64,000 nucleotides of DNA, taken from the sequence record MW879344.1, one strand, 5' to 3'. The position numbers and the translations under genes were made by a program. Shown piece by piece: positions 26,907 through 64,000 of this stretch. Position 1 is the stretch's first letter. Each line of letters starts with the position of its first letter. The notes beneath the pieces were generated by a model that made no database searches, was not told the DNA's origin, and saw nothing but the letters and a program-made list of their open reading frames with translations.

Positions 26907-27623
26907 ATGCAAGTACAATTCCAAACCGTTCTATTTGATTCTGAAGATTATCGTTTCGCAGTAGTAGTTGAAGAAACCCTAGTGATTGTAACCTCAAAAG
27001 GTGAAATCGAGCTAGAGTTCGATTCTGAAGCGGAAGCACTAGCAGGTCAGCTAGAACTCGGTGAAGTACTAGATGCTGCTAAAGGTTCTAACATCGCTTC
27101 TGTAATTCAGGACGCTGCTGAAACTGTTTCTGGTCTAGTTTCTGGTCTAGTTTCTGGTCTATTCGGCAAAACTGGTTTCGGTTCAGTTAAATCTAAAGTA
27201 GCTGGTAAAGCTGCTAAAGCAACCGCTGGTATTGATGAGCGTGTAAATGAGTTCCTACGTCAACTTGACGAAGCGATCAAAGGTGCAGAACAAGCTGTTC
27301 CAGCTCGTGCAGATACCCGCCGTGCTTCCACCGCTGAAGCAGAAGATGTATTCGGTACTTCTCGCACTCGTCGTGCAGTAGATGCTGATGCAGTAGTAAG
27401 TACTCTATCTGATGCTGATCTACAAGCAGTTATCAGTACTAAAGCAGACCAACTAATTGCTACTAACCGTCAGGTTCAGGGTCTAGTTGCAAATCTACGC
27501 CGCTTCCATAGCGAAGAAGAAGTGCAAGAAGCTATCGATGCACACAAAGAAATGGTATTCAACGTTGCTCGTGCGAACGATGAACTAACCGTTAACGAAG
27601 TGTTCAATCACCTTCTACGTTAA
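26907..27623 (+). CDS. Ala/Glu-rich protein with strong codon bias
   Basis: GAGG SD; VSGL x3 repeat. Confidence 0.85.
   Translation: MQVQFQTVLFDSEDYRFAVVVEETLVIVTSKGEIELEFDSEAEALAGQLELGEVLDAAKGSNIASVIQDAAETVSGLVSGLVSGLFGKTGFGSVKSKVAGKAAKATAGIDERVNEFLRQLDEAIKGAEQAVPARADTRRASTAEAEDVFGTSRTRRAVDADAVVSTLSDADLQAVISTKADQLIATNRQVQGLVANLRRFHSEEEVQEAIDAHKEMVFNVARANDELTVNEVFNHLLR
27126..27161 (+). repeat. 12-nt tandem repeat x3 (GTTTCTGGTCTA)
   Basis: Direct reading. Confidence 0.9.
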
Positions 27624-28212: not shown

Positions 28213-28226
28213 GAGTGCCTTTTTTT
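28199..28226. terminator. bidirectional intrinsic terminator
   Basis: AAAGGCACTC-ATAA-GAGTGCC-TTTTTTT between convergent genes. Confidence 0.85.
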
Positions 28227-29358
28227 ATGCCTTACCAGCGATAACAACTTTACCAGCAAAATCTTCATTGCTATATAATGTAATATTATCTGAACTATCT
28301 ACTTCTATTGTTATTGAAACCATTTCAGAACCATCATATACTGAAACGGATGGATTTGATTTATCATGTATACTAAATGGTATTTCCATTTTATATGAAG
28401 AACCATCATCAGACCACACTAAACTAGTACTGAATACTGATAATTGATCCGTTGGTCCAATTATAACAATATCCATATCCTCTGCAACTAATTGAGTTAC
28501 TGAAATGTCACCAGTACTGTTTACATGTACTTCAGGATTATATACTACCCCATTTGGATTTTGAATTTGAACTACCAAATCAGCACCACGATTATGTACA
28601 CTTTCAGGTAATGTATATGTAAATGTTCCATCACCATTATCTACAAATTGTGCAGATGCTACAGGTATATTAGTTACAAAATCAGTATCAGTTCCAGATG
28701 GTAAAACATCAAAAGGTACTGTTGCAGTATTATAATGTGGTGATGTTATTACAATAGTACCTACACCAGTATTTTCAAATACGACATTATCGAAGGTGAA
28801 TACTCTGTTAACTACATTAGTAGTATATATTAAACCTTCTGGTGTAGTTAATGTAACGATCATTCCATCTTCATTTAATGCACCACTAATTGCACTTACC
28901 GAACCAGTTACTGTAGTACTATCAACAGTAACCGTATTAACGATAATAGTTCCTAAGTCTGGAATTGGTATGTCACATTCAGGGGTATACATATCATAAA
29001 GATATGTTCCATCACTCAAAACAACTTTATTAGATAAAAACCGGATTACAAATCCTTGTTCAGATAAAGAATCGTTATAGCCACGAACAAAGAAAGAATT
29101 TTTTGGAATCATATCCAATAAATTATCATCCGATAAACTATAATCGAGTACTCTATTACTTGTGTTATAACCAGTTAATTGTACTTTTTGATACACCATA
29201 TTAGATACGGGATCAATCAAGTCGAACATATGAATAGATCTTTGCTTATATATTCGCATATTTTTTAGCTTAGTCCCATCCTTTAATAATGCTCCACTCA
29301 CAATAAATCCACATACTCCGTATGGATAATCATTTATGCCAGCAATAGGTTTAGCCAT
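28225..29358 (-). CDS. probable virion structural protein (beta-rich, Ig-like)
   Basis: Thr/Val/Ser-rich beta pattern; late-type ATAAATA at 29384-29390 (minus). Confidence 0.6.
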   Translation of the reverse strand: MAKPIAGINDYPYGVCGFIVSGALLKDGTKLKNMRIYKQRSIHMFDLIDPVSNMVYQKVQLTGYNTSNRVLDYSLSDDNLLDMIPKNSFFVRGYNDSLSEQGFVIRFLSNKVVLSDGTYLYDMYTPECDIPIPDLGTIIVNTVTVDSTTVTGSVSAISGALNEDGMIVTLTTPEGLIYTTNVVNRVFTFDNVVFENTGVGTIVITSPHYNTATVPFDVLPSGTDTDFVTNIPVASAQFVDNGDGTFTYTLPESVHNRGADLVVQIQNPNGVVYNPEVHVNSTGDISVTQLVAEDMDIVIIGPTDQLSVFSTSLVWSDDGSSYKMEIPFSIHDKSNPSVSVYDGSEMVSITIEVDSSDNITLYSNEDFAGKVVIAGKA

Positions 29359-48049: not shown

Positions 48050-48322
48050 ATGATTCGACCAGATATGAACGTTATTCAACGTTGGAATACCGTTAAGGTT
48101 TCTGATCTTCCAGAACTTCTAAAATCACAGGGATTTCATTTTGTAAAATCTTTTAGTACTGATGAACATAGGATTTTTGTTAGTCAAGATAATTCATTGA
48201 TGATAATCTTTGAACGTAATGTAGGGAAAGTGTATAGTACTCGAAATCGTAAACAGTCTTTACATTCATTCACTGTAGTACCAGAAGGTCCAAAGTTAAA
48301 TCAAATAAAACGTGCTGAATAA
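48050..48322 (+). CDS. hypothetical protein
   Basis: AAGGA SD. Confidence 0.75.
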   Translation: MIRPDMNVIQRWNTVKVSDLPELLKSQGFHFVKSFSTDEHRIFVSQDNSLMIIFERNVGKVYSTRNRKQSLHSFTVVPEGPKLNQIKRAE

Positions 48323-51331: not shown

Positions 51332-51676
51332 ATGTCAGAATTTTTCATATACTTATGTAATGGAATATTAATTTCAGAATTCGTTTTCGGTGCATTGATT
51401 GCAGTTGGTTGGTTATGTTGTGCCAATTATTATTTCTACATTGAAGATATTATAACTAATGTAGGAATTGGAATAATCTATCTCTATTTGGGAATATTTG
51501 CATTCTTATCAATAGTTCTGTCTCTCATGGATGGATGGAAAGGATTTACCTTTATATCAATAATTGGAACTATATTGACTGGTATAGTACTAATTGTATG
51601 CTTTATTGTTAATGTAGTACCTACTGTACTTAAACTCCGTCAGTACTTTGCTAATAAAAGAGGTCGCCGTATATGA
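51332..51676 (+). CDS. 3-TM membrane protein, array member
   Basis: LRQYFANKRG. Confidence 0.75.
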   Translation: MSEFFIYLCNGILISEFVFGALIAVGWLCCANYYFYIEDIITNVGIGIIYLYLGIFAFLSIVLSLMDGWKGFTFISIIGTILTGIVLIVCFIVNVVPTVLKLRQYFANKRGRRI

Positions 51677-52035
51677 TAGATTTTATCGCATCTATATTCC
51701 AACAGATTGGAATGTATCCACATATTTTAAGCATCCCACTATATGCATTCACTATATGCATTGGAATGTTTATAATCGGATGGTTCTTTAGTACTGATTA
51801 TTATGATAAGATTGCTGAAGACTATGACGATGATGATATGCCAGGTATAGTATGTGTGTTATTGATATGTTTACTGACTATAGCATGGCACGTAGTTAAT
51901 TACGTATATGGACTAGATAATACTTTTAATATAATTAGTAATCTAGTAGCATGGGTAGTGTTCGTTATACCGATTGTATATGGTTCGTTAGATTCATTTC
52001 GTCTTAAAATTCGTAAAAAACGAGGTAAGTCATGA
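51673..52035 (+). CDS. 3-TM membrane protein, array member
   Basis: WFFSTDYYD; basic tail. Confidence 0.75.
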   Translation: MIDFIASIFQQIGMYPHILSIPLYAFTICIGMFIIGWFFSTDYYDKIAEDYDDDDMPGIVCVLLICLLTIAWHVVNYVYGLDNTFNIISNLVAWVVFVIPIVYGSLDSFRLKIRKKRGKS

Positions 52036-52373
52036 GTATTTGGGAATGGGTTGTACAAAATTCTATTGTGCTAACTGCACCATTGTTTTTGTATATTACA
52101 TTGTATGCATTCACAACAATAACTTGGTTGTTTGCAACTGATTTTTATGACAGTTTTAAATACAATTACTCAAATAACTTTGGGATGTTTCATACCTTGT
52201 TGTGGGGAGGATTAGCAACAATCCCAATTGGCTACTATTGGACATGGGTTAATCCCTTTACCTTTATAATCAATGGGTATATTTCATTAATACTTATAGT
52301 GATTTTTATTGCTAAGATACATTCAACAGCCAATTCTATTCACCAGTACTTTCGTTCTAAACGAGGAAAATAA
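52032..52373 (+). CDS. 3-TM membrane protein, array member
   Basis: WLFATDFYD; HQYFRSKRG. Confidence 0.75.
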   Translation: MSIWEWVVQNSIVLTAPLFLYITLYAFTTITWLFATDFYDSFKYNYSNNFGMFHTLLWGGLATIPIGYYWTWVNPFTFIINGYISLILIVIFIAKIHSTANSIHQYFRSKRGK

Positions 52374-52705
52374 TGTTAATACCAATTCTTTATACATACA
52401 ATGTTTTATTCACTGCACTAATAGTAGTACTTATTTTAGATTGGTTGTTTGCACTGGATAAAATAAATCCAGTACTAGATAAGTGGGTACATGATGAATC
52501 TTATCTATTACCAGTGATGGGAGTTGAAGTTATTGCTTTATTCTCATTAGTATTTGCACTAATCACTGATTTAAATTTGTTCATGTACTTTAGTCTAGCT
52601 TGTTCATTAATGTCCATTGGTATTTTACTAATTGGTACGTGTGGATATAGTTGTTACATCGTACTTGCTAAGGTACGTCAGTACTTTATTGAACGAAAAG
52701 CGTAA
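52373..52705 (+). CDS. 3-TM membrane protein, array member
   Basis: WLFALD; VRQYFIERK. Confidence 0.75.
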   Translation: MLIPILYTYNVLFTALIVVLILDWLFALDKINPVLDKWVHDESYLLPVMGVEVIALFSLVFALITDLNLFMYFSLACSLMSIGILLIGTCGYSCYIVLAKVRQYFIERKA

Positions 52706-52771
52706 AATGCCTTGACATGGGAGACTTTATCCCCTATAATGTACCCATCAACTGACAGAGAGGAACACAAA

Positions 52772-53065
52772 ATGCAAGAAGATATTATTGTTGAAGTAGC
52801 GAAACGTACCATTGTTGAAATCAAAGAGCAAGTGCTGTCTACCCCGTTTGTAGCTGCACCATTCGCTGTGTATGGTCTAATCGCAAGTTCATTTTTCGCC
52901 ACGTTTATTTGTATTCTGGCGATCATCGGCTTCGTAGCGTACCAAGAGTACAAACAATACGAAGAAGAATTACTTGCTGGTAATCTGGAAGTACCTAACA
53001 AGGTAGATCCTATCGAAACTGAAGTTCAGAAACAGGCCGATACTGAAAGTACGGATCAGAAGTAA
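52772..53065 (+). CDS. membrane-anchored acidic protein
   Basis: After TTGACA...TATAAT, GAGG SD. Confidence 0.75.
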   Translation: MQEDIIVEVAKRTIVEIKEQVLSTPFVAAPFAVYGLIASSFFATFICILAIIGFVAYQEYKQYEEELLAGNLEVPNKVDPIETEVQKQADTESTDQK

Positions 53066-53120
53066 TTTTCAAAATCCCCTACATCGGTAGGGGATTTTTA
53101 ATTAAGATGAAGGTGCAACA

Positions 53121-53753
53121 ATGAAGCGTACTAAAAATATTAATCATAAGCGTTTTCGTAAAGTACATAAATTCTGGAAATATAGTGCGTTGTTTGTAGC
53201 GATTGGAAGTACTTTCTTCCTAACTGCGTGTGATGATTTTCAGGAAGAAAATGTTTCTGTTTATAAAACAATTCAGGATTGTGAAAAAGGTGCAAGTACT
53301 CAAGCTGATAAAGATCGTTGTGCATTAGATTATCAAAATGCATTAGGTCAAGCTGAGAAGGTTGCACCTAAGTATGATTCAAAAGGTTCATGTGAAGAAG
53401 AATTTGGTTATGATCAATGTAAGCCAAGTTCACAAACAGCTTCACATAGTTCAGGTTTTATGTGGTTCCCAATAATGAGCGGTTATAGTTCCTCACATGC
53501 GAACTATCCAAGTCAACCATTGTATTCAAGTTCACGTTATTCATCTCCGATGTATAACAAGTTCGTTGACGCAAAAGGTAATTCGTTTGGGAACTTTACC
53601 CATGCAGGTAAAGCAAGTGTATCTCGTTCAGCATTAGCACCTAAACCTGCTATGACAACAACAACACGTGGTGGATTTGGAAGTACTGTACACGCACAGT
53701 CCTCTGCTAAATCTGTTTCTCATTCATCTGGTGGTCGTAGCTTTGGGGGTTAA
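53121..53753 (+). CDS. DUF1190 (YgiB-like) lipoprotein
   Basis: MKRTKNINH..FRK, LTAC lipobox, APKY...CEEEFG, RGGFG...SFGG tail. Confidence 0.85.
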   Translation: MKRTKNINHKRFRKVHKFWKYSALFVAIGSTFFLTACDDFQEENVSVYKTIQDCEKGASTQADKDRCALDYQNALGQAEKVAPKYDSKGSCEEEFGYDQCKPSSQTASHSSGFMWFPIMSGYSSSHANYPSQPLYSSSRYSSPMYNKFVDAKGNSFGNFTHAGKASVSRSALAPKPAMTTTTRGGFGSTVHAQSSAKSVSHSSGGRSFGG

Positions 53754-53754
53754 T

Positions 53755-54237
53755 ATGGAACACAAAATTGTTGGTCATAGTACTGATGAATCAATACAAA
53801 CAACTTTCTATATCATCAATAGTACTAATACTGATAAAGTACTGTTCGATTCTATGGGTGGATTGCAGTTTGAACCAATCACCTATAAAAATGAATGGGC
53901 TAATGTAATGAACTTTACAACTGCTAAAGCTGCTTATTCATATATTAAGCATTTGTATAGCAAAGATAGTATCATTACTAAGCATTATAACTTAGCAGTT
54001 ATGGGTCGTACTATCATCGAAACTGTAAACTCCGTGGTTTACAGTACGTACTTGACACATAAAGAACATACTGATGCACAGAATTATGGTCACATGGATA
54101 CATTTGAACATTTCTATTCATCTATACATCCTGAATGGTCAGAAAGTAAAATGCGTGAAGAACGCAGTACTGAAGCACCTGAGTATATTTCTTCAGTACT
54201 TCAAAATGCCTTCGAGTTGTACAAGCAACTGTTGTAA
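53755..54237 (+). CDS. hypothetical protein
   Basis: ATG 53755. Confidence 0.75.
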   Translation: MEHKIVGHSTDESIQTTFYIINSTNTDKVLFDSMGGLQFEPITYKNEWANVMNFTTAKAAYSYIKHLYSKDSIITKHYNLAVMGRTIIETVNSVVYSTYLTHKEHTDAQNYGHMDTFEHFYSSIHPEWSESKMREERSTEAPEYISSVLQNAFELYKQLL

Positions 54238-54240
54238 TTA

Positions 54241-54266
54241 AAAAAGCCCCAATAAGGGGCTTTTTT
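54241..54266. terminator. bidirectional intrinsic terminator
   Basis: AAAAAGCCCC-AATAA-GGGGCTTTTTT between convergent genes. Confidence 0.85.
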
Positions 54267-55401
54267 ATGATAATGAAGGAGTAACTAATGGTTGGAAACC
54301 AATAACTACCTTACTACTTCCATAATTTGGAAGTAATGAATAATTGCCACTATTACCACAACCATATATTTTAAAATCGGTTATAAAATATGTAGTACCT
54401 GTACCGAAATGAATAATATCTTTGAGTTGGGATATTATAGCAGGATCAGTACCAGGAACTTGTGTAAATGAAGACATATAATTATTCCAAGGTGCAGCAA
54501 TAGTATTTGCTCCACCAATTGGATATGTCGAAGTTTGATAACCACTGAAATAAAGATTATTATCTGTACCAATTATGTGAGTACAACTTTGATAACTATG
54601 TATTGATTTTATAGTTGACAAATTAAATGGAAGTACTATCCAGTCGGTAACACCAGAAGTTAAACCATTACCTAGTTGACCATTAGAATTTTGTCCTTGT
54701 ACATACCACGTACCATCACTTTTCTTTACAAATAATGCACCATACATTACGTATACATCAACAACATCTGTGTTTAATGTTATAAATGATGGATTAGTCG
54801 ATGGATTAGCTGAACCTAATAAATTTGTTCCATTATATCCAGAACCAACTATTGTACCATCATTTTTTAATACAAATAAGTTATCAATAATATCATCTTT
54901 TGTGAATATATCTTTCACATTAGTCAATGGTAGTTTAATAAAAGATTGACTTGTTGTAGTAGTTCCATTTCCATATGAACCATATCCATTTCCACCAACT
55001 GCCCAAACTTCACCAACAGTATTCAAAACAAATATAGAACTAGAACTTACACACATTTTTTTAACAATACCAAATGAGTTAAAACTTGAGCTAACATTGC
55101 TCCAAGGTACGGTTGTACGTATTCCAAATGGATTTGATGATCCGCTCCACCAGTAAGTACCATCATTCTTGAGTACAAATGACCAACTAGTATTACTCCA
55201 TACATCTTTAACATCTGAAATTGTTTTTACAAATCCAGTAAATGGTACACCTAAACCTAACCTAGAATCATCACCCATTCCATATAACGAATTTGTTGAA
55301 TCCTGAGAAAGTAGCCCTAAACTAATTCTACTAGTAACAAACTTTTTATAGAATCTTTTTTCGCGTATTGTAGTATTACTTATTATTGGGAAAGGTAACA
55401 T
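54265..55401 (-). CDS. MLPFP-family, RCC1-like beta-propeller protein
   Basis: VWAVGGNGYGSYG, GQNSNGQLG repeats. Confidence 0.8.
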   Translation of the reverse strand: MLPFPIISNTTIREKRFYKKFVTSRISLGLLSQDSTNSLYGMGDDSRLGLGVPFTGFVKTISDVKDVWSNTSWSFVLKNDGTYWWSGSSNPFGIRTTVPWSNVSSSFNSFGIVKKMCVSSSSIFVLNTVGEVWAVGGNGYGSYGNGTTTTSQSFIKLPLTNVKDIFTKDDIIDNLFVLKNDGTIVGSGYNGTNLLGSANPSTNPSFITLNTDVVDVYVMYGALFVKKSDGTWYVQGQNSNGQLGNGLTSGVTDWIVLPFNLSTIKSIHSYQSCTHIIGTDNNLYFSGYQTSTYPIGGANTIAAPWNNYMSSFTQVPGTDPAIISQLKDIIHFGTGTTYFITDFKIYGCGNSGNYSLLPNYGSSKVVIGFQPLVTPSLS

Positions 55402-55412
55402 ATATATTCCTC

Positions 55413-56255
55413 TTATTGATTATTTGTTAATTGATTAGGGAATGATCTACCTGCACCCCATATAACTCGTACTCCACCTTGGCATGTAGTAGAATTTGAA
55501 CCCCCTGCACCACGATAGTTAGTACTTCCCATATTTGAAGAACCAGCAGCACCTTCATTTCCCCGACCTCCACCAGTACCATTGTTACCTTGACCATACA
55601 TAGCAGTTCCACCACCTGAACCACCATATGACTGTGAACCTAGACCAGAACCGCCACCGCCGCCAGCACCACCAGCACCAGTTCCTCCTGATCCTCCTGA
55701 ATATACACCACCATTTCCTCCTGAACCAGAATATCCTCCAGCACCACCGGAACCACCTCTGCCGTTTCCATATTGTCCAGCACCACCGGAACCACCATTA
55801 GCACCCCCATCATTTATAGTACTTGCAGATTTACCACCTGTACCACCTGTACCTGCATATGGTGTTGTACCACCCGTACCACCATTCGCTATAACTAATG
55901 TATCAGTATTTCTTCTAATTGCACTTAATGTTCCACCGCCCCCAGTACTACCTATTGAATTAACTGGTGCACCTCTAGAACCAACAATTATTGTTAAGGT
56001 TTCGCCTGGAGTTACAGGAATATTATTTCTAAAACTTAGTCCACCGCCTCCGCCTCCGCCACCAGCAGGATATGAACCTGATCCACTAGGTGGACCATAA
56101 TATGTATTTGAACCACCACCACCACCGATAACAACTGCACTGATAGAATAAACATCATGAGGTACTGTAAAATTAAATGTTCCAGTACTAATCCATTCTT
56201 GTTGACCTTTAGGTGGAAGTTTGTTAGTATTACTTATTATTGGAAATGGTAACAT
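55413..56255 (-). CDS. MLPFP-family, glycine-rich fibre-type protein
   Basis: FTVP..VYSISAVVIGGGGG...GGVRVIWG. Confidence 0.8.
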   Translation of the reverse strand: MLPFPIISNTNKLPPKGQQEWISTGTFNFTVPHDVYSISAVVIGGGGGSNTYYGPPSGSGSYPAGGGGGGGGLSFRNNIPVTPGETLTIIVGSRGAPVNSIGSTGGGGTLSAIRRNTDTLVIANGGTGGTTPYAGTGGTGGKSASTINDGGANGGSGGAGQYGNGRGGSGGAGGYSGSGGNGGVYSGGSGGTGAGGAGGGGGSGLGSQSYGGSGGGTAMYGQGNNGTGGGRGNEGAAGSSNMGSTNYRGAGGSNSTTCQGGVRVIWGAGRSFPNQLTNNQ

Positions 56256-56269
56256 TTTTTTCTCCTTAA

Positions 56270-57433
56270 TTAAAATGGCATCCCATTCATTTTTGTTAAT
56301 GTAGTTCGTACTATATTTCCATCAGGCAACTGTGTTCCGTTACCAGTAGCTCCCCCCGCACCCCATAAATCACCAGAATTTGTTAATATTAATATCTTGG
56401 ACCAATCTTTTGAAATAGTATTAATATTATCTATACCTCCTAATGCTGTAAGATTTAGAGTATATACTGAACTTATTGGTGTAGTTGTATTACCATTGCC
56501 TATTTGTCCATATTCATTTCGACCACAATGACGTATTGTACCATTGCTTAAATATAATGGTGAACCTGAATTAGCATTAGTTGTATTACATTGAGTATAA
56601 AATCTTTGTACTGGATTAAATGATATAGAATTATTAATTATAGGAACAGTACTTGACGTTGGTGAAAGACTACCAACACCAGCTTGACCAGAACCATTAT
56701 TACCAGACCAATATATTTGCCCACTCAATAAGTAATACCATGTTGTAGTATATGTAGCTCCAATTTCAAAAACACCGGTTCTAGATTGTGTTGGTGTAGT
56801 TATAATTGCAGTACTTCCTACCCCACCTTCCCCATAGCTATTTTGACCACAAAATAAAACATTGTTAAATGAATCAATAAAATGTGTCCCAACAAAAGAA
56901 CAACGTAATTTTTTAATTCCATTAAGAGTACTATGTATCGTAAGACTTAAAATATCTGAACCTGAACTACCATTACCAATTTCACCATATGTATTTCGAC
57001 CACAATAAACATATTGACCACTTGTAGTTAAAATTCTAATACATTGACCAATATAACAATCTGCAATATCATATACACTTACACCAATTGCAGAAAAATA
57101 TTGTGTTACGTTTAACCATGTAGTAGTATTAGTACCAATTTGTGGAAATGCAACAGCACTTCCAGAATAATAAATTTGTAAATCAGTTCCTAAAACTAAT
57201 GTTCCATGTACGCCTAAAAAATATTTCCATACTCCATTTTTACATACTGTAAAAGTAGGAACATTTGAAGTTGTACCTAAACCTAGTTGTGAATAATTAT
57301 TTTGACCATATCCATATAATGTATTATCTTTTAAAAACATTGTGTTAGTATAATTCGTTTGAAGTGGTCTGTCAAACGGTTCTAATGGAGGTCTTGTATT
57401 TCCATATACTACTAGTACTGGACTCGGAAACAT
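56270..57433 (-). CDS. MLPFP-related (MFPSP), RCC1-like protein
   Basis: GQNNYSQLG, GRNTYGEIG, GRNEYGQIG. Confidence 0.8.
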   Translation of the reverse strand: MFPSPVLVVYGNTRPPLEPFDRPLQTNYTNTMFLKDNTLYGYGQNNYSQLGLGTTSNVPTFTVCKNGVWKYFLGVHGTLVLGTDLQIYYSGSAVAFPQIGTNTTTWLNVTQYFSAIGVSVYDIADCYIGQCIRILTTSGQYVYCGRNTYGEIGNGSSGSDILSLTIHSTLNGIKKLRCSFVGTHFIDSFNNVLFCGQNSYGEGGVGSTAIITTPTQSRTGVFEIGATYTTTWYYLLSGQIYWSGNNGSGQAGVGSLSPTSSTVPIINNSISFNPVQRFYTQCNTTNANSGSPLYLSNGTIRHCGRNEYGQIGNGNTTTPISSVYTLNLTALGGIDNINTISKDWSKILILTNSGDLWGAGGATGNGTQLPDGNIVRTTLTKMNGMPF

Positions 57434-57480
57434 ATTAAATCTCCTTTGTAAATTAATATCCAGTATTTACCTGTGTAATA

Positions 57481-57507
57481 AAAAAAGCCCATCCGTAGAT
57501 GAGCTTA
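57481..57507 (-). terminator. intrinsic terminator (minus)
   Basis: rc AAGCTCATCT-ACG-GATGGGCTTTTTT. Confidence 0.7.
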
Positions 57508-57510
57508 AAT

Positions 57511-58239
57511 TTAAATAGGATATATGTTGTTAATATCAAAGTTCTCTGTCCATACTGCTCCAGTTCGGAAACGCACTCTCTCGACAATACTATGTACTGT
57601 TCCAGATGGTGAGTTTACATGTCCACCAACACCACAAATAGTTGCAGATGCTGGAGATGCAACAGTGTAAGTAAATGAATCAACTAATATACCATTAATA
57701 AAAAAATAATTCATATTAGAAGTACTATCATATACATATGCAATATGTTTCCATGTGCTGGTGAACAACGATGAATAATTAGATTTAGGTCTAATAATAT
57801 TAGCACCGTTATTTTGATACCTCATACCTTGAGTATCTACACCATAAAACCATAATAAGTACTTGTTGTCATTTGGAGCTAATTGTCTATACATACCATA
57901 AGGTATAAATTCTATACCAGCAGTACTTGATTGTGAATACCACATATCTATAGTGAATGATGAAGTACTAAATGATGGTGGTATCTGTGAACTACCAGCC
58001 ACTAATAATGCACCATACAGTGCTATACCACTTCCATATGGAGAAGCAACACCAGTATTAAGAGTGGGATTAGGGGAGCTTGCATTTTGTTTATCTATAC
58101 TAATTATTTTACTTTTGTAGTCATTGAAATTGGTATTAGGAATAAAATTATTTGAATCAAATGCAAGTACTACATTGGAACCTGTGTACCAATTTTTGGC
58201 AACATTTCCATATTCCGATATTCTTGGAAATGGTAACAT
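57511..58239 (-). CDS. MLPFP-family, LamG/ConA-like lectin-fold protein
   Basis: FTIDMW, WKHIAYVYD, FFINGIL, VERVRF. Confidence 0.75.
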   Translation of the reverse strand: MLPFPRISEYGNVAKNWYTGSNVVLAFDSNNFIPNTNFNDYKSKIISIDKQNASSPNPTLNTGVASPYGSGIALYGALLVAGSSQIPPSFSTSSFTIDMWYSQSSTAGIEFIPYGMYRQLAPNDNKYLLWFYGVDTQGMRYQNNGANIIRPKSNYSSLFTSTWKHIAYVYDSTSNMNYFFINGILVDSFTYTVASPASATICGVGGHVNSPSGTVHSIVERVRFRTGAVWTENFDINNIYPI

Positions 58240-58248
58240 ACTATATCC

Positions 58249-59046
58249 TTATAAATCTGTTGTTTTTGAACTAGGAAATGCCCTTCCATTTCCCCATATA
58301 ATACGAACAGCCCCTGCTCCACCAGGACATAATGCAGTACCTCCACCACCTCCACCATATAAGCCGCCCCTTGATACTGTTGTACTTGTTGCAACACCAT
58401 CGGTTCCACCAGAACCACCTCTACCTACTGAACTCGATGCATTAGATGGAGAACCAGTTCTTGCCGCTCCACTTGCACCTTCACCAAGTAAACCAACTCC
58501 ACCACCAGAACCACCATAGAAGGTTGAACTAGATGTAAAAGCTACACCTGCTCCCCCTGCTCCACCCGTACCTGCACTAGATATAGTACCATTACCAATA
58601 CCACCATTACCAGAATATCCTCCAGCACCGCCACCACCACGTGATGAAGTATCGAATCCACCATTACCACCACCAGTACTGTTAACACCAATAGTACTAC
58701 TAGTGTCATTGTTATTACCACCTTTAGCAATTAATAATACTTCTGAAGTGCTAGCTCTTACTATTTTAGATGATACTGATACTGACCCAGCATTTGTTTG
58801 ATTCGCTGCGGTTATATTAAGTACTTCTCCTGGTGTTACTGGTATATTGTTTCTCCAGCGGAGATCACCACCAGCACCACCAATTACTGTATTTGAAATA
58901 TATCTACCTGAACCAGCACCTACGCATACGGCACATATACTATGAACTCCAGCAGGAACGGTAAAGGTTGTTGTTTGTGCAGTCCATTGTTGTTGACCAG
59001 TCGGTACTGATACTGTTGTGTGACTGATGATTGGAAATGGTAACAT
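58249..59046 (-). CDS. MLPFP-family, glycine-rich fibre-type protein
   Basis: FTVPAGVHSICAVCVGAG...GAVRIIWG; paralog of 55413-56255. Confidence 0.8.
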   Translation of the reverse strand: MLPFPIISHTTVSVPTGQQQWTAQTTTFTVPAGVHSICAVCVGAGSGRYISNTVIGGAGGDLRWRNNIPVTPGEVLNITAANQTNAGSVSVSSKIVRASTSEVLLIAKGGNNNDTSSTIGVNSTGGGNGGFDTSSRGGGGAGGYSGNGGIGNGTISSAGTGGAGGAGVAFTSSSTFYGGSGGGVGLLGEGASGAARTGSPSNASSSVGRGGSGGTDGVATSTTVSRGGLYGGGGGGTALCPGGAGAVRIIWGNGRAFPSSKTTDL

Positions 59047-59103
59047 ATTGAATTCCTTATTTTAAAATATTTACCCAAAATAATATTAATTTGAGTTAAG
59101 TTT

Positions 59104-60237
59104 TTATACACTTGGAAATGATGTTTGTCTTGAACCAAGTACAACATTCGTGGTAGTACTTCCTAATCTCCCATCAGCACTATAACCAGATGCATATTTC
59201 GTGTTATCAATCAAGTTTATAATTAACATACCAGCACGTATATTATCTGAATAATCACTAATTGTGGTAGGGAATGTATATGAAGTAAACACTGGAACAA
59301 TAGCAGTACTTCCAGTAGTACTTAAACTAGAATATGAATTTATTCCAGCGAACCATAAAGTACTAGGATCTGATTTAAGTACATAATATGTATTGTATTC
59401 TGAATCAACTGCGGATAATACGTTTGATGCCATTAGATAAGGATCACTGTAATATACATTACCTGTATTATTATTCCCTGCTTGTGCTTGTGACGAATTT
59501 CCAATAAAATATAAATTATCATTGGAATCTATATAGTTCAAATGCTTTCCACCAACTGAAAAAGATTTAACACCATTCAAAAATGGAGCACTTGTCCATA
59601 TTCTTTTAGTACTGTCAGTTGCATTCATTGGTATACCTGTAGCACTTACTGCACCACATGCTTGATAACTTCCATCCATCATCTTTGCATATGTACACAT
59701 ACCAGATGAACCAGTACCATAAGCATATCCAACTTCTTGAACTGAACTTAATGTCTTGGTTAAAGTACTGTACGAAGATACAGTAGTACCAAATTGATAA
59801 CTTGTATTATTTCCTATAAAATATAAATCACCATTCTTTAGAAGTACACAGGCACTTTGAAAAGAAGCACTTTTAATAGTCACTATATCACTTATGTTTG
59901 TTATACCAGCAGACCTAAATTGAGAAGTCAAATCTAATTTTTGATATGATGAACCAGTCATTCCCCAAAAGGAGTTATCACTACCGTATCCGTAAATTTT
60001 ATTACTTGCATAACATAACATGTAAGTGATATACTGACCAGTAAACACAGCATCTACCGATTCACCTGGTGGGGTTTGTTCGAACCATGCAGTACTGACT
60101 GGTGCATTTGACCAATATCTACCACGCACAAATACTCTTTTGTTTATAAAATATAATGTGTCAATTAACCCATTAAGTAATGGTTCTATTGGCTTATATC
60201 TACTATTCGTATTACTTATTATTGGAAATGGTAACAT
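59104..60237 (-). CDS. MLPFP-family, RCC1-like protein
   Basis: LYFIGNN repeats. Confidence 0.75.
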   Translation of the reverse strand: MLPFPIISNTNSRYKPIEPLLNGLIDTLYFINKRVFVRGRYWSNAPVSTAWFEQTPPGESVDAVFTGQYITYMLCYASNKIYGYGSDNSFWGMTGSSYQKLDLTSQFRSAGITNISDIVTIKSASFQSACVLLKNGDLYFIGNNTSYQFGTTVSSYSTLTKTLSSVQEVGYAYGTGSSGMCTYAKMMDGSYQACGAVSATGIPMNATDSTKRIWTSAPFLNGVKSFSVGGKHLNYIDSNDNLYFIGNSSQAQAGNNNTGNVYYSDPYLMASNVLSAVDSEYNTYYVLKSDPSTLWFAGINSYSSLSTTGSTAIVPVFTSYTFPTTISDYSDNIRAGMLIINLIDNTKYASGYSADGRLGSTTTNVVLGSRQTSFPSV

Positions 60238-60246
60238 TTTTTCTCC

Positions 60247-60504
60247 TTAATTAAAATCTGGTATTACTAATGGCCTATAAACACTATCATTTTGTGGGAA
60301 CATTAATCCTAAACCCCATACCTCTTGATAATCTGCACCTAAACTGTACGTAGTATCACCAAGTTGTCCGTACTGGTTATTGCCTCTAGTATATAATTGT
60401 CCATTTGTTCCAAGTACTGCAATGTGGGATGATCCAGCTATAAACTTTTGAATTCTGTAATTACTTTTTTGACGTAAATTACTTATGATTGGAAATGGTA
60501 ACAT
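60247..60504 (-). CDS. MLPFP-family, truncated single RCC1-like repeat
   Basis: GQLYTRGNNQYGQLG; only 85 aa. Confidence 0.65.
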   Translation of the reverse strand: MLPFPIISNLRQKSNYRIQKFIAGSSHIAVLGTNGQLYTRGNNQYGQLGDTTYSLGADYQEVWGLGLMFPQNDSVYRPLVIPDFN

Positions 60505-60518
60505 TTGTTGTTCTCCTA

Positions 60519-61676
60519 TTATTCTGGAACCTCTTGTGGTAAAAAATTATATGTAGTCGCATCTAACCACGTTACATTACCACAGGCATATAATATATTA
60601 TTCTGTACAACAAATGTAACACCTGTAGTATCAGCATTACCCGCTGAACAAAATGATGTAATTCCAGTACTAGGCAATGGCATAATAGTAAATCCAGTAC
60701 TCTTGTTAGTACTTGAACCTAAACTTGGCCCAGCACTTCCCGCTGAATATAAATTTGTACTACCTGCATCAGTATAAAATGATTGGTGACCAATTTCTAA
60801 ATATCCAGTACCAAATGAACTAAATGAATTTCCAGTTCCTCCAGCACCAACCCTAAACGTAGGTGTGTAGTTAGAACCATAAGGAGGTATAGCACCACCA
60901 GGATTCGTAGATGTGTATCCACAATATAATATTGCAGTATCATTCAATGTACTATCAGATGCAGCATATATTAATGTATGAATGTATCCCTCAAAGGCCA
61001 TGACAGGATATGTGTATCCAGCAGGTAATGTTATAGTAGTCCATGAAGCCATGTCAGTATTACTATTATTTCCCATCTTATAATTCTGTGCTAAACCCCT
61101 TGCATACAATATATTATTTGTACCTATACAAAACGTTCCAGCTAGATTACTGTGAACGTACTTCACCGATGAACGTGTTAACGTAAATGCAGTACTAGTA
61201 CTATTCAAGGCACCAACTCCTAAAGTATTATATGCGTTAAATCCTAAAGCATATAAGTTGTTATTCGTATTCAATAATACAAATGTTCCATATATGTTTA
61301 AACATATCTGCTTAACTGTCGTTGCAGGTGTTGAGGTTAATGTGTATAATCTATCATATACCGTCCACAAATAACTCGTACCACCATATCCTAATGCTCT
61401 ACCATATCCAGCACATAAGAATTGATCATCATATGTTTGTATTATAGTGTGATAATTGTTTAACCAAACCTCTTTAACATTCGTCCGTACTAGTACCCAA
61501 TTCTTATAATCACTAGGTGAAGCTATTCCAAAATTAGTATATTGATTTGAACCCCGCATGTATAAATTACCATTATCGTATAATAATGCAACAACTCTAC
61601 CTGATCCAAGTACTTTCTTTATTTTATTTTTTACTACTGTATTCCCATACTTATTCATTATTGGAAAGGGTAACAT
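60519..61676 (-). CDS. MLPFP-family, RCC1-like protein
   Basis: LYMRGSNQY, LYALGFNAYNTLG repeats. Confidence 0.8.
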   Translation of the reverse strand: MLPFPIMNKYGNTVVKNKIKKVLGSGRVVALLYDNGNLYMRGSNQYTNFGIASPSDYKNWVLVRTNVKEVWLNNYHTIIQTYDDQFLCAGYGRALGYGGTSYLWTVYDRLYTLTSTPATTVKQICLNIYGTFVLLNTNNNLYALGFNAYNTLGVGALNSTSTAFTLTRSSVKYVHSNLAGTFCIGTNNILYARGLAQNYKMGNNSNTDMASWTTITLPAGYTYPVMAFEGYIHTLIYAASDSTLNDTAILYCGYTSTNPGGAIPPYGSNYTPTFRVGAGGTGNSFSSFGTGYLEIGHQSFYTDAGSTNLYSAGSAGPSLGSSTNKSTGFTIMPLPSTGITSFCSAGNADTTGVTFVVQNNILYACGNVTWLDATTYNFLPQEVPE

Positions 61677-61781
61677 GTAAAATTCTCCTTATTTTTTACT
61701 ACTGTGTAGTAGTCACCTATAATCATCAGTATTTACCTCATTAAACAAAAATAGCTCAACCTAATATTGAGCTATATGTCG

Positions 61782-61880
61782 TTACACTAATTGTCTTATA
61801 CTTAGTTTCTGAATGTATCCATAAAATGTAGATACAGATGCACCACGTACATTATTACTTATTATTCGTAGTGGTAACAT
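61782..61880 (-). pseudogene. MLPFP-family relic (32 aa, MLPLRIISN...)
   Basis: Family leader with GGAG SD, early stop. Confidence 0.6.
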
Positions 61881-61889
61881 ATATCTCCC

Positions 61890-62555
61890 TTAACTTAATT
61901 TTGTTATCTTTATATATGCTAATGATCCTGAACTATAATAGTACTGACCACTCGCCGCATCTACATAGCCACCACCTATACTAAAGTAATCACCTCGACC
62001 AAATGCATATGCAGGATAATTCTGTGTTACTCCAGTACGTGCATTGTATATGCTCCAACCAATCCCACGTATGAATGTTATCTTTAATGTCTCCCAACCT
62101 AATGTATTCGCCCCATTCATCAGTACTCTATTAAAACTAGAACCCGTATCACAAAATATTTGAAAGTACGTGCTCGGATACTGATTCGCACTACACGATA
62201 TTCCCGCAACCCTGCGTGTACCATAATTTCCAGTCTGCCATAGTACCTGTAATGTTCCCGTATTACACTTGAACATGTAATCTATCTCGAAATCGATATT
62301 CCTTAAATCTAATTGTGAACCATCAGTAATTGCAGGTGATAAGTAATATCCATTGTTGAATACCATTACATTTCTATCTACTTCAGAATCATATTGTACT
62401 ATTCCCGCTGAACCACTCGATAACGGAAACTGTACCCCAGTACTGTCTATCATAGATGTACTTCCTATATCTTGTCTATCAAAATCTATATCCAATAGTA
62501 TATTAGCCGCTGGTGCAACATTTCCGTACTCGACTATTCTCGCAAATGGTAACAT
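61890..62555 (-). CDS. MLPFP-family (MLPFA), LamG/ConA-like protein
   Basis: FEIDYMF, WETLKITF, GSLAYIKI. Confidence 0.7.
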   Translation of the reverse strand: MLPFARIVEYGNVAPAANILLDIDFDRQDIGSTSMIDSTGVQFPLSSGSAGIVQYDSEVDRNVMVFNNGYYLSPAITDGSQLDLRNIDFEIDYMFKCNTGTLQVLWQTGNYGTRRVAGISCSANQYPSTYFQIFCDTGSSFNRVLMNGANTLGWETLKITFIRGIGWSIYNARTGVTQNYPAYAFGRGDYFSIGGGYVDAASGQYYYSSGSLAYIKITKLS

Positions 62556-62599
62556 CTCTATTCCTCTCCTTGAACCTAGTGTTAGGTCACTCCATTATT

Positions 62600-63682
62600 T
62601 TATTTCGGCTGCTCTAACTTATAGTACGATATAGAAGTACCCTGATTAACTAATAAATCAGAACCAGCTCCATATATCCCCGTACTCGTGTGCAATACCG
62701 TACTCGTGTTTGTACCTGTTAAATCAATTAATGATCCACTAAAAGATGTAATAGGATAATACTTCGTCCAGACCGTCTGATTCGATGAAGAACTTCCAGA
62801 ATATAAAGTCTGCCCACATCCCCATATACCATCACTTCCAATCACCGATGCTCCATATCCCCAACAATGTATCTTAGCAGGTAACAGTATTAAAGTATTC
62901 ATTAACTTCGTTAAACCCCTATTACCTGTACTTCCACTTAAACCTAAAGATATTAATGCATTCTGACCCCTGCCCCATATCTCTCCATTAAGAAGTACTA
63001 TATATACATTGTTAATTCCTCCTAATGCAAATGATACAGAAGTCGTTATACTAGTGTAAGTACTAAATGATGTACCACTGTTAGAAATCTGTAACTGTGC
63101 ATTTGAACCAGTACCAAATAATTCTGAACCCCGTACTATATAAGTGTTGGTACTGTTAATACTAAATGAATCTACATTACTAGAACTCAACGTTAGTACT
63201 GGACTTATCGCTGTACTTCCTGTACCTAAATTTGTACCAGTTAAATATAAATTCTTATTACTTAATAATACTCCTATACTACCAGTACTACTCTGTATAT
63301 CTGTAACAGTACTTCCATCTGAGGTTAAGGTGCTTAAATCATAAAACTCTGTCCATGTCAGTACTTGAGTAGATACAGAACTATCACCTATTATTGCTCC
63401 CCTCTTACCACTGTATAGGAGCTTCTTCCCCTTACGTATTATAGATGTGTATGTGTTGGAGTTCCTATTCAAATATATATCATCCACTCCAGTTGCACTC
63501 AATGTCCATGTAGTCCTCTGTGTGGTATCACCTAATCCTAATTGACCATTGGAATTTGTACCATAAGAGTATACATTTCCTGTGTTACTTAAAGCAAGAT
63601 AATATCCATTAGCACCAACGTATTTTACAATAGATACCTTCAATATTATATGTGTATTACTTATTATTGGAAATGGTAACAT
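62600..63682 (-). CDS. MLPFP-family, RCC1-like protein
   Basis: VYSYGTNSNGQLGLG, IWGRGQN. Confidence 0.8.
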   Translation of the reverse strand: MLPFPIISNTHIILKVSIVKYVGANGYYLALSNTGNVYSYGTNSNGQLGLGDTTQRTTWTLSATGVDDIYLNRNSNTYTSIIRKGKKLLYSGKRGAIIGDSSVSTQVLTWTEFYDLSTLTSDGSTVTDIQSSTGSIGVLLSNKNLYLTGTNLGTGSTAISPVLTLSSSNVDSFSINSTNTYIVRGSELFGTGSNAQLQISNSGTSFSTYTSITTSVSFALGGINNVYIVLLNGEIWGRGQNALISLGLSGSTGNRGLTKLMNTLILLPAKIHCWGYGASVIGSDGIWGCGQTLYSGSSSSNQTVWTKYYPITSFSGSLIDLTGTNTSTVLHTSTGIYGAGSDLLVNQGTSISYYKLEQPK

Positions 63683-63758: not shown

Positions 63759-63765
63759 TATTTAC
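63759..63765 (-). promoter_or_regulatory. late-type promoter core GTAAATA
   Basis: Same core upstream of array genes at 57464-70, 59068-74, 61730-36; resembles T4 late TATAAATA. Confidence 0.6.
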
Positions 63766-64000
63766 CCCATAGAACTGCGTAGGAAGCTCTTAGAGAGCAT
63801 TAGTTTGATTCCTGTAGTATCGCAGTGCGATATCGAAAGGATTCAAACACGCCAAAATAGTGCTTTCTAAAAGTACTGGTTATTATTATAGTACTATATA
63901 TTTGTACAACATGTGGATGTTTACAGGTGTAAGTAGGTACAGTACTATAATACATTATCCAGTATATTCTAGTACTGTCAAGTACTACCCCCTGCCGCTA

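Follow-up and report, generated by a model that had tools for sequence, protein, structure and literature searches.

A member of a clade-wide family of tagged virion-protein cassettes at the genome end of Erwinia phage pEa_SNUABM_49

The window analyzed here, a stretch of 64,000 nucleotides (nt), is 100% identical to the last part of the genome of Erwinia phage pEa_SNUABM_49 (Eneladusvirus BF; MW879344.1, 358,049 bp), its base 1 being record base 294,050 and its end the record end. It contains an array of 10 open reading frames (ORFs) and a 32-codon relic at 54265-63682 on the minus strand, all of which are headed by a leader of the MLPFP type. Within a family of tagged virion-protein cassettes that spans the clade, this array represents Eneladusvirus. 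The leader forms a module of its own, common to unrelated folds, and published proteomics support the association of the array proteins with virions in close and distant relatives. A preliminary description of the window had claimed the 10 ORFs and the relic with their shared leader, and both are found at the coordinates given there, on the minus strand. It was largely right on the anatomy and the recombination mechanism of the array; docking and adhesion, which it also proposed, are hypotheses.

The leader as an independent module

Each gene of the array is a self-contained cassette of Shine-Dalgarno site, leader, body, and stop codon, with a terminator and a TAAATA box at some borders (Table 1). 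The ORFs start with MLPFPIISN/H, MLPFPRISEYGN, MLPFARIVEYGN, MLPFPIMNKYGN, or MFPSPVLVVYGN and continue into six RCC1-like propellers (one truncated), two glycine-rich domains, and two lectin-like jelly rolls, one a Laminin_G_3 domain and the other unconfirmed. The leaders of these paralogues share 5 to 9 of their 9 residues (only 3 in the case of the divergent MFPSP gene), compared to an identity of ∼25% for the bodies. At the DNA level, the leader occurs nine times in the whole 358-kb record, every time within the array.

The consensus M-[LI]-P-F-x-[RKI]-[ILM]-x-x-Y-[GA]-N, with a small residue at position 5, is found at the start of 64 distinct genes from seven Rak2-like jumbo phage genomes and is mostly shortened to MLPFPIISN in the window. 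M1 and P3 are conserved in 100% of these genes, F4 in 97%, and Y10 and N12 in 78% each, with L or I at position 2 and I, M, or L at position 7. The codons vary synonymously (CCA 42, CCT 15, CCG 7, and CCC 1; TAC 26 and TAT 24; GGA/GGG/GGT/GGC) while the peptide is kept, which indicates that selection acts on the peptide.

The conservation of the tag is also apparent within the fold classes. In an alignment of nine LamG-type members, the sole invariant columns are M1, L2, P3, F4, R6, Y10, and N12; in an alignment of 20 RCC1-type sequences, the invariant positions are M1, P3, and five glycines. Once the tag is trimmed, the class profiles show no similarity to each other (hhalign probability of at most 0.2%). 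The same tag heads RCC1-like propellers, Kelch propellers, LamG-type jelly rolls, glycine-rich domains, and some unassigned bodies. Smaller phages encode untagged members of these domain families, and thus, the tag was joined to pre-existing domains.

In IMG/VR, a degenerate DNA pattern for MLPFxRxxxY[GA]N matches only on four contigs of 348 to 378 kb, and a pattern of the PIISN type matches on three jumbo contigs and one doubtful 18.6-kb contig. Each jumbo genome carries 8 to 13 tag genes, nearly all within a single array. CBB contains ten and XbC2 nine; at least two are found in GAP32, and at least 11 tag-headed genes are present on a 121Q-like contig. In the Munch array, MIPFx[RK][IM]xxY[GA]N heads 17 of 17 genes, 16 of which are caught by the strict YGN-type DNA pattern. 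RaK2 and K64-1 contain no tag of the YGN type. Outside the arrays, five scanned genomes hold one true tag gene, a dispersed family member of 244 amino acids (aa) in CBB. Other leader-like matches in these genomes are rejected as chance, being out-of-frame ORFs of 8 to 20 codons without a Shine-Dalgarno site.

The 18.6-kb IMG/VR contig, which resembles T4-like cyanophages, contains an orphan 109-aa ORF starting MLPFPIISNPS (L031:13178-13507) for which the phage collection holds no homologues. This ORF may be a chance match (∼0.2 hits expected) or a distant use of the tag.

Folds and composition of the array proteins

The six RCC1-like ORFs match PF25390 with E-values between 2.8e-23 and 3e-08, all at scores under the 150-bit curated cut-off, and PF00415 lies above its cut-off for R2 and the 85-aa truncated cassette. 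In a comparison with the PDB, the RCC1-like family profile retrieves the HERC1 RCC1-like domain (7e-39), followed by RPGR, UVR8, and RCC1. A phmmer search with one RCC1 member does not recover the other full-length propellers of the genome. The AlphaFold2 model of R4 is a seven-bladed β-propeller with a mean local confidence (pLDDT) of 86 and a predicted template-modeling (TM) score (pTM) of 0.88, which Foldseek places at TM scores of 0.72 to 0.76 to UVR8 and 0.63 to 0.67 to RCC1. Residues 1 to 13 of this model (pLDDT of <50) lack secondary structure, which begins with a first strand at residue 19.

L1 contains a Laminin_G_3 domain (PF13385; 35.2 bits versus a cut-off of 27.6 bits). It is modeled as a β-sandwich with a pLDDT of 70.5, in which the first ten residues average ∼49; among its neighbors in Foldseek (TM scores of ∼0.45 to 0.54) are lectin-like jelly rolls as well as the chain of a cyanophage tailspike. 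In the AlphaFold2 models of both R4 and L1, the tag is thus predicted to be a disordered, flexible tail outside the fold.

The glycine-rich cassettes score 24.0 bits (G1, just under the cut-off of 24.3 bits) and 18.2 bits (G2) with Gly_rich_2 (PF21722). They match phrog_4474 at 1.5e-65 (G1) and 1.8e-83 (G2), and their neighbors in the protein atlas are Gly_rich_2 clusters at 0.97. A sequence search of the PDB gives no match for the glycine-rich or LamG-type proteins. The fold classes of the preliminary description hold for the six RCC1-like propellers, the two glycine-rich, Gly_rich_2-like domains, and one Laminin_G_3 domain, whereas its second "LamG" protein, L2 (61890-62555), is without a Pfam match and only plausible as such. 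One of seven L2 homologues reaches Laminin_G_3 at an E-value of 8.6e-4, and alignment of L2 with the tag-trimmed L1 family by hhalign gives a probability of 12% (E-value of 0.0024). A word-indexed protein search finds 4 to 5 close homologues each for L2 and R4. NCBIfam gives no matches for the array and PADLOC weak, chance-level matches only.

The array folds are of peptide- or glycan-binding types. Charged residues make up 6 to 14% of the array proteins versus 23 ± 6% of 67 other ORFs of the window, and S/T/N/G/Q/Y make up 46 to 67% versus 32%; net charges range from −4 to +6. The five full-length propellers contain 9 to 12% charged residues with a net charge of 0 to +4, so that in this test, which is one of composition only, they show no sign of the basic surface or tail of an RCC1 chromatin or DNA condensation factor. 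Their low charge argues against DNA condensation.

Fusions of tag, RCC1-like domain, and Kelch domain, 667 to 688 aa in length, are encoded by an IMG/VR contig of 355,155 bp (L006:6413-8416) and by XbC2 (XbC2_591; L029:10478-12544). The linkers between their domains (LMTTPNSVLWGN and LMSTPQSVLWTS) show a faint resemblance to a decayed leader, as if two cassettes were read through. These fusions in two relatives hint that family members may adjoin each other.

Presence of orthologues and family members in virions

Analysis of CBB virions by electrospray ionization tandem mass spectrometry (ESI-MS/MS) detected seven of the ten tag proteins (CBB_536, CBB_537, CBB_548, CBB_549, CBB_551, CBB_552, and CBB_553), all of which start MLPF.R..Y[GA]N. 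In GAP32, homologues of two CBB tag proteins are listed among the structural proteins; Rak2 counterparts are lacking. Liquid chromatography-tandem mass spectrometry (LC-MS/MS) of pEa_12, pEa_47, and pEa_50 listed four "DNA condensation" proteins of 41.6, 41.5, 40.2, and 38.0 kDa and one "PE-PGRS" protein of 25.9 kDa. In the genomes of these three phages, the two names are given to array genes only, and the masses fit c3, c10 or c6, c7, c5, and c0, respectively (for the cassette names, see below). The virion association of the array proteins is therefore supported by at least five orthologues in sister isolates and by the distant relative CBB, the evidence coming from these published data and not from pEa_SNUABM_49 itself. 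The preliminary description had proposed virion-borne proteins and named absence from virions as a refutation; the proteomics of the sister isolates and of CBB finds orthologues and family members present.

Proposed role of the tag and alternative explanations

Each protein would consist of the short N-terminal tag, a short linker, and one binding-type fold. The tag would bring all family members to one common site on the assembling virion, where the folds would act as interchangeable heads (an RCC1-like or Kelch propeller, a ConA/LamG-like jelly roll, or a glycine-rich domain). Judged from composition and fold types, these heads would bind host-surface molecules and face outward. Since the cassettes share junction and leader DNA, homologous recombination would add, delete, and replace whole cassettes between closely related phages. 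We infer tag-mediated incorporation, an external position, an adhesin function, and late timing. This reading of the array, as late, particle-borne, single-domain proteins whose tag brings interchangeable, outward-facing binding heads to the virion, is the most likely of those considered, with the balance for and against it about even.

An unlikely alternative, and the one that survives best, takes the tag as a T4-like capsid-targeting sequence (CTS). The cargo would then enter the prohead core, lie within the head as part of the inner body, and reach the host by ejection, for example as an anti-defense factor. The T4 CTS, MKTYQEFIAE, which is the nearest precedent in function, shows no sequence likeness to the array tag. 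The T4 system has the same architecture and the same locus plasticity: the internal proteins of T4 are diverse and hypervariable, encoded at a hypervariable locus, and share only an N-terminal targeting sequence of ∼10 residues on otherwise unrelated proteins (PMC3012670); this sequence is sufficient to load foreign cargo into T4 (PMC3012670). An inner body is present in 121Q and phAPEC6, and the phAPEC6 authors guessed that the RCC1-like proteins build it. Presence in virions fits the head-internal position equally well. Some leaders carry [ILM]-x-E at positions 7 to 9, resembling the T4 gp21 cleavage motif. However, only 12 of 64 leaders have E at position 9, where the others carry N, K, Q, S, T, D, or another residue, and the PIISN type lacks the acidic site, so a gp21-type cleavage site is not conserved. 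The array proteins are also larger (22 to 42 kDa) than the T4 internal proteins, and with their few charges (6 to 14%) and near neutrality, they are unlike basic, DNA-embedded internal proteins. Their lectin-like and propeller folds are of the binding type and belong to domain families that occur untagged in smaller phages. The outward-facing role, roughly even in its own chances, is favored over the unlikely head-internal one because the cleavage residue is not conserved, because the proteins are poor in charges and rich in S/T/N/G/Y like fibre and adhesin domains, and because their folds are binding modules.

It is quite improbable that the tag has no role in assembly and is kept for expression or handling, as a start context or a chaperone or modification signal, or that the junction was homogenized by gene conversion. 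The leader does share its junction repeat with the Shine-Dalgarno site, and some phages have a promoter and a terminator there as well; recombination in the junction block is demonstrated (see below), and five leader copies in pEa_SNUABM_49 use almost identical codons. Across genera, however, the amino acids are fixed while the codons differ, and the untranslated parts of the junction are not conserved, so that homogenization of DNA alone does not explain the tag. The tag is, moreover, specific to proteins found in virions, as the other genes of the five scanned genomes lack it except for the dispersed CBB member.

Very doubtful, as a further development of the docking idea, is a universal "plug" function, in which the disordered MLPF tag would insert into a peptide-binding site on a fibre protein or on the propellers of other family members. 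Rak2-like jumbo phages would thereby assemble mixed, flexible surface "hairs" or tips from the cassettes that each genome contains. The 12-residue tag would then provide a combinatorial, non-covalent display and could load arbitrary cargo.

The reading of the literature, "tandem duplication" of "DNA condensation proteins" (here, one ancestral gene that duplicated and diverged with the N terminus evolving slowest), draws on the mutual paralogy of the RCC1-type members (phrog_4219) but is hardly probable at all given one tag on at least four unrelated folds (RCC1, Kelch, LamG-like, and glycine-rich), the untagged occurrence of these families in other phages, whence the joining of the tag to pre-existing domains, and the low charge, which speaks against DNA condensation.

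Several points weigh against the outward-facing binding heads proposed above. The 12-residue tag is much shorter than the known virion anchor domains. The proteomics demonstrate presence in phage preparations rather than a position on the particle, the pEa lists hold some non-structural proteins as well, and the matching of their entries to array genes relied on product names and masses instead of accessions. No RNA run holding the array was found, and late expression is therefore read from motifs only. BF, isolated on Serratia, and pEa_19, isolated on Erwinia, share one cassette set, so that no relation of the array to the isolation host is apparent. The hair-like fibres of CBB and phAPEC6 are not reported for Eneladusvirus isolates; a link between the array and the "hairiness" of virions cannot be drawn.

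If the 12-residue tag suffices for incorporation, it would explain a large family misannotated as "DNA condensation," "PE-PGRS," or "kelch-like" across a clade of 350-kb phages that includes candidates for the biocontrol of fire blight. It would also point to parts that possibly build the unexplained hairs of CBB and phAPEC6 and provide a very small handle with which proteins of choice could be displayed on the particles of jumbo phages.

Exchange of whole cassettes between isolates

The comparison of arrays across isolates, suggested as a check in the preliminary description, covers six isolates of one species (p49, p12, p47, p19, BF, and p44) and shows that their arrays differ by whole cassettes. 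In p49, the isolate of the window, the order is c6 c0 c12 c9 c1 c2 c10 (truncated) c3 relic c4 c5. The order in p12 is c6 c0 c7 c9 c1 c2 c3 relic c4 c11 c5 and that in p47 is c6 c0 c7 c9 c1 c2 c10 c3 relic c4 c5; p19 and BF are like p47 minus c9, and p44 is without c6 and with c11. The differences between near-identical field isolates can be read from this cassette map, a point of importance for the choice of phages and their tracking in cocktails.

Shuffling had been attributed to recombination at leader DNA, and two of the six differences indeed cross over there. The loss of c10 in p12 results from a crossover inside the first 17 nt of the leader, and the presence or absence of c11 results from one inside a 70-nt identical block comprising untranslated region and leader. 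The other four lie elsewhere: c9 and c6 were removed by stop-to-stop excisions, the swap of c12 for c7 extends from just past the promoter box to the next start codon, and the 85-aa ORF is c10 with an internal deletion of 898 nt. The junction without c9 (L1) is also seen in an independent sequencing run.

R2 (c12) has no close relative; its best match, in coliphages, shows 41% identity. The region 54000-56255 (R1 and G1) is ∼92% identical to the five sister isolates, compared to 98 to 99% in the remaining array. Together, the patch of 92% identity and the orphan R2 point to an import from an unsampled relative.

Promoter boxes, terminators, and the junction repeat

The minus strand of the array contains exactly four copies of TAAATA, each located between genes and reading GGTAAATAYT (Table 1), in agreement with the GTAAATA cores of the preliminary description, for which the term "late" comes from motifs. 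The chance of all four falling within the 766 intergenic bases of 10 kb is ∼3e-5. Two of the four boxes lie directly 3' of terminator hairpins. The CBB paper predicted [AC]TAAATA before structural genes and noted its resemblance to the T4 late promoter, and the same TAAATA box is found in the cassette junctions of the 121Q-like contig and Munch. The block of ∼50 nt that had been described as near-identical at 56227-56276 and 60209-60257 is identical but for one A in a run.

On the 121Q-like contig (L009) and in Munch (L025), nearly every cassette is preceded by one repeat containing a terminator hairpin, TTAAATA...TATAAT, the Shine-Dalgarno site, and the leader, whereas a promoter box is found at 4 of 10 cassette borders in the window. 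Contigs of the public run X2 end at the 50-nt block (60209-60257/56227-56276) and continue into the 3' end of R2. A second sample thus contains the R2 cassette, and short-read assemblies are interrupted at the repeat.

Relation to known systems

The preliminary description had guessed that such arrays may already be noted in related jumbo phages, which is right for phAPEC6, Munch, and 121Q. The papers on phAPEC6, 121Q, Munch, CBB, pEa, JP4, and fEgEco12 note repeats or annotate "chromosome condensation" proteins; neither the N-terminal tag nor its span over unrelated folds is described in them. The Rak2-like RCC1 arrays of phAPEC6/121Q, Munch, and CBB belong to the same gene family, occupy the same place at the genome end, and carry the same tag: CBB_536, CBB_537, and CBB_548 to CBB_554, 17 Munch genes, and at least 11 121Q-like genes start with the tag of the window, and several of their products were detected in virions. 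pEa_SNUABM_49 differs from these arrays in its orphan R2, its truncated c10, and the lack of a Kelch cassette.

The branched tailspike sets of CBA120/G7C and RaK2/K64-1 resemble the array in presenting many heads on a shared attachment element and in recombining at the conserved part. Known anchors of phage receptor-binding proteins are folded domains of ∼100 residues or more. In contrast, the shared part of the array consists of 9 to 12 residues predicted to be disordered, and RaK2 and K64-1 themselves are among the phages without it. A precedent for the action of such a tag is the tail motif FNPVYPY of the adenovirus fibre, a short N-terminal peptide rich in proline and aromatic residues that suffices to dock the fibre onto the penton base. 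That system differs in the unrelated virus and protein, the single fibre type per site, and the lack of a cassette array.

Coordinates and neighboring genes

TABLE 1 Features of the array in window coordinates
Feature	Coordinates	Strand	Description	Remarks
R1	54265..55401	-	Leader MLPFPIISN and RCC1-like propeller, 378 aa	PF25390 8.6e-19; phrog_4219 1e-87
G1	55413..56255	-	Leader MLPFPIISN and glycine-rich domain, 280 aa	Orthologue ("PE-PGRS family protein," 25.9 kDa) in virions
Junction block, copy 1	56227..56276	-	50 nt	End of preceding gene, Shine-Dalgarno site, and 29 nt of leader
R2	56270..57433	-	Divergent leader MFPSPVLVVYGN and RCC1-like propeller, 387 aa	Only in this isolate; replaces c7 of sisters
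Late-promoter-like core	57464..57471	-	GGTAAATA	Upstream of R2
Intrinsic-terminator-like hairpin and T run	57485..57506	-		After L1
L1	57511..58239	-	Leader MLPFPRISEYGN and Laminin_G_3/ConA-like jelly roll, 242 aa	Absent from pEa_19, BF, and run X1
G2	58249..59046	-	Leader MLPFPIISH and glycine-rich domain, 265 aa	phrog_4474 1.8e-83
Late-promoter-like core	59068..59075	-	GGTAAATA	Upstream of G2
R3	59104..60237	-	Leader MLPFPIISN and RCC1-like propeller, 377 aa	
Junction block, copy 2	60209..60257	-	49 nt	Contigs of run X2 break here
Truncated cassette	60247..60504	-	85 aa	RCC1 cassette c10 of sister isolates minus internal 898 nt, frame-shifted
R4	60519..61676	-	Leader MLPFPIMNKYGN and seven-bladed RCC1-like propeller, 385 aa	Orthologue (41.6 kDa) in virions
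Late-promoter-like core	61730..61737	-	GGTAAATA	Upstream of R4
Intrinsic-terminator-like hairpin and T run	61751..61775	-		After relic
Relic	61782..61880	-	Shine-Dalgarno site and MLPLRIISN..., 32 codons	Kept in 6/6 isolates
L2	61890..62555	-	Leader MLPFARIVEYGN and phrog_6011 "virion structural protein" domain, 221 aa	Probably lectin-like, fold unconfirmed
R5	62600..63682	-	Leader MLPFPIISN and RCC1-like propeller, 360 aa	Orthologue (38.0 kDa) in virions
Late-promoter-like core	63759..63766	-	GGTAAATA	Upstream of R5, head of array

The other virion-protein genes of the window (28225-29358, 26907-27623, and 48050-48322) lack the tag and give no clue to its partner. Two of them, 28225-29358 on the minus strand and 26907-27623 on the plus strand, are isolated "virion structural protein" genes embedded in a tRNA and early-gene region, and the former carries a AATAAATA box ∼20 nt before its Shine-Dalgarno site.

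On one side, the array borders a cluster of small membrane-protein genes, and on the other, the divergent early region with which the record starts. This cluster, flanking the array on the other strand at 51673-53753, contains a tandem series of four ORFs for small membrane proteins, of which three are visibly similar, and also encodes a DUF1190-like protein with a lipobox-like LTAC. The small-membrane-protein neighborhood beside the array is conserved in CBB (CBB_539 to CBB_547).

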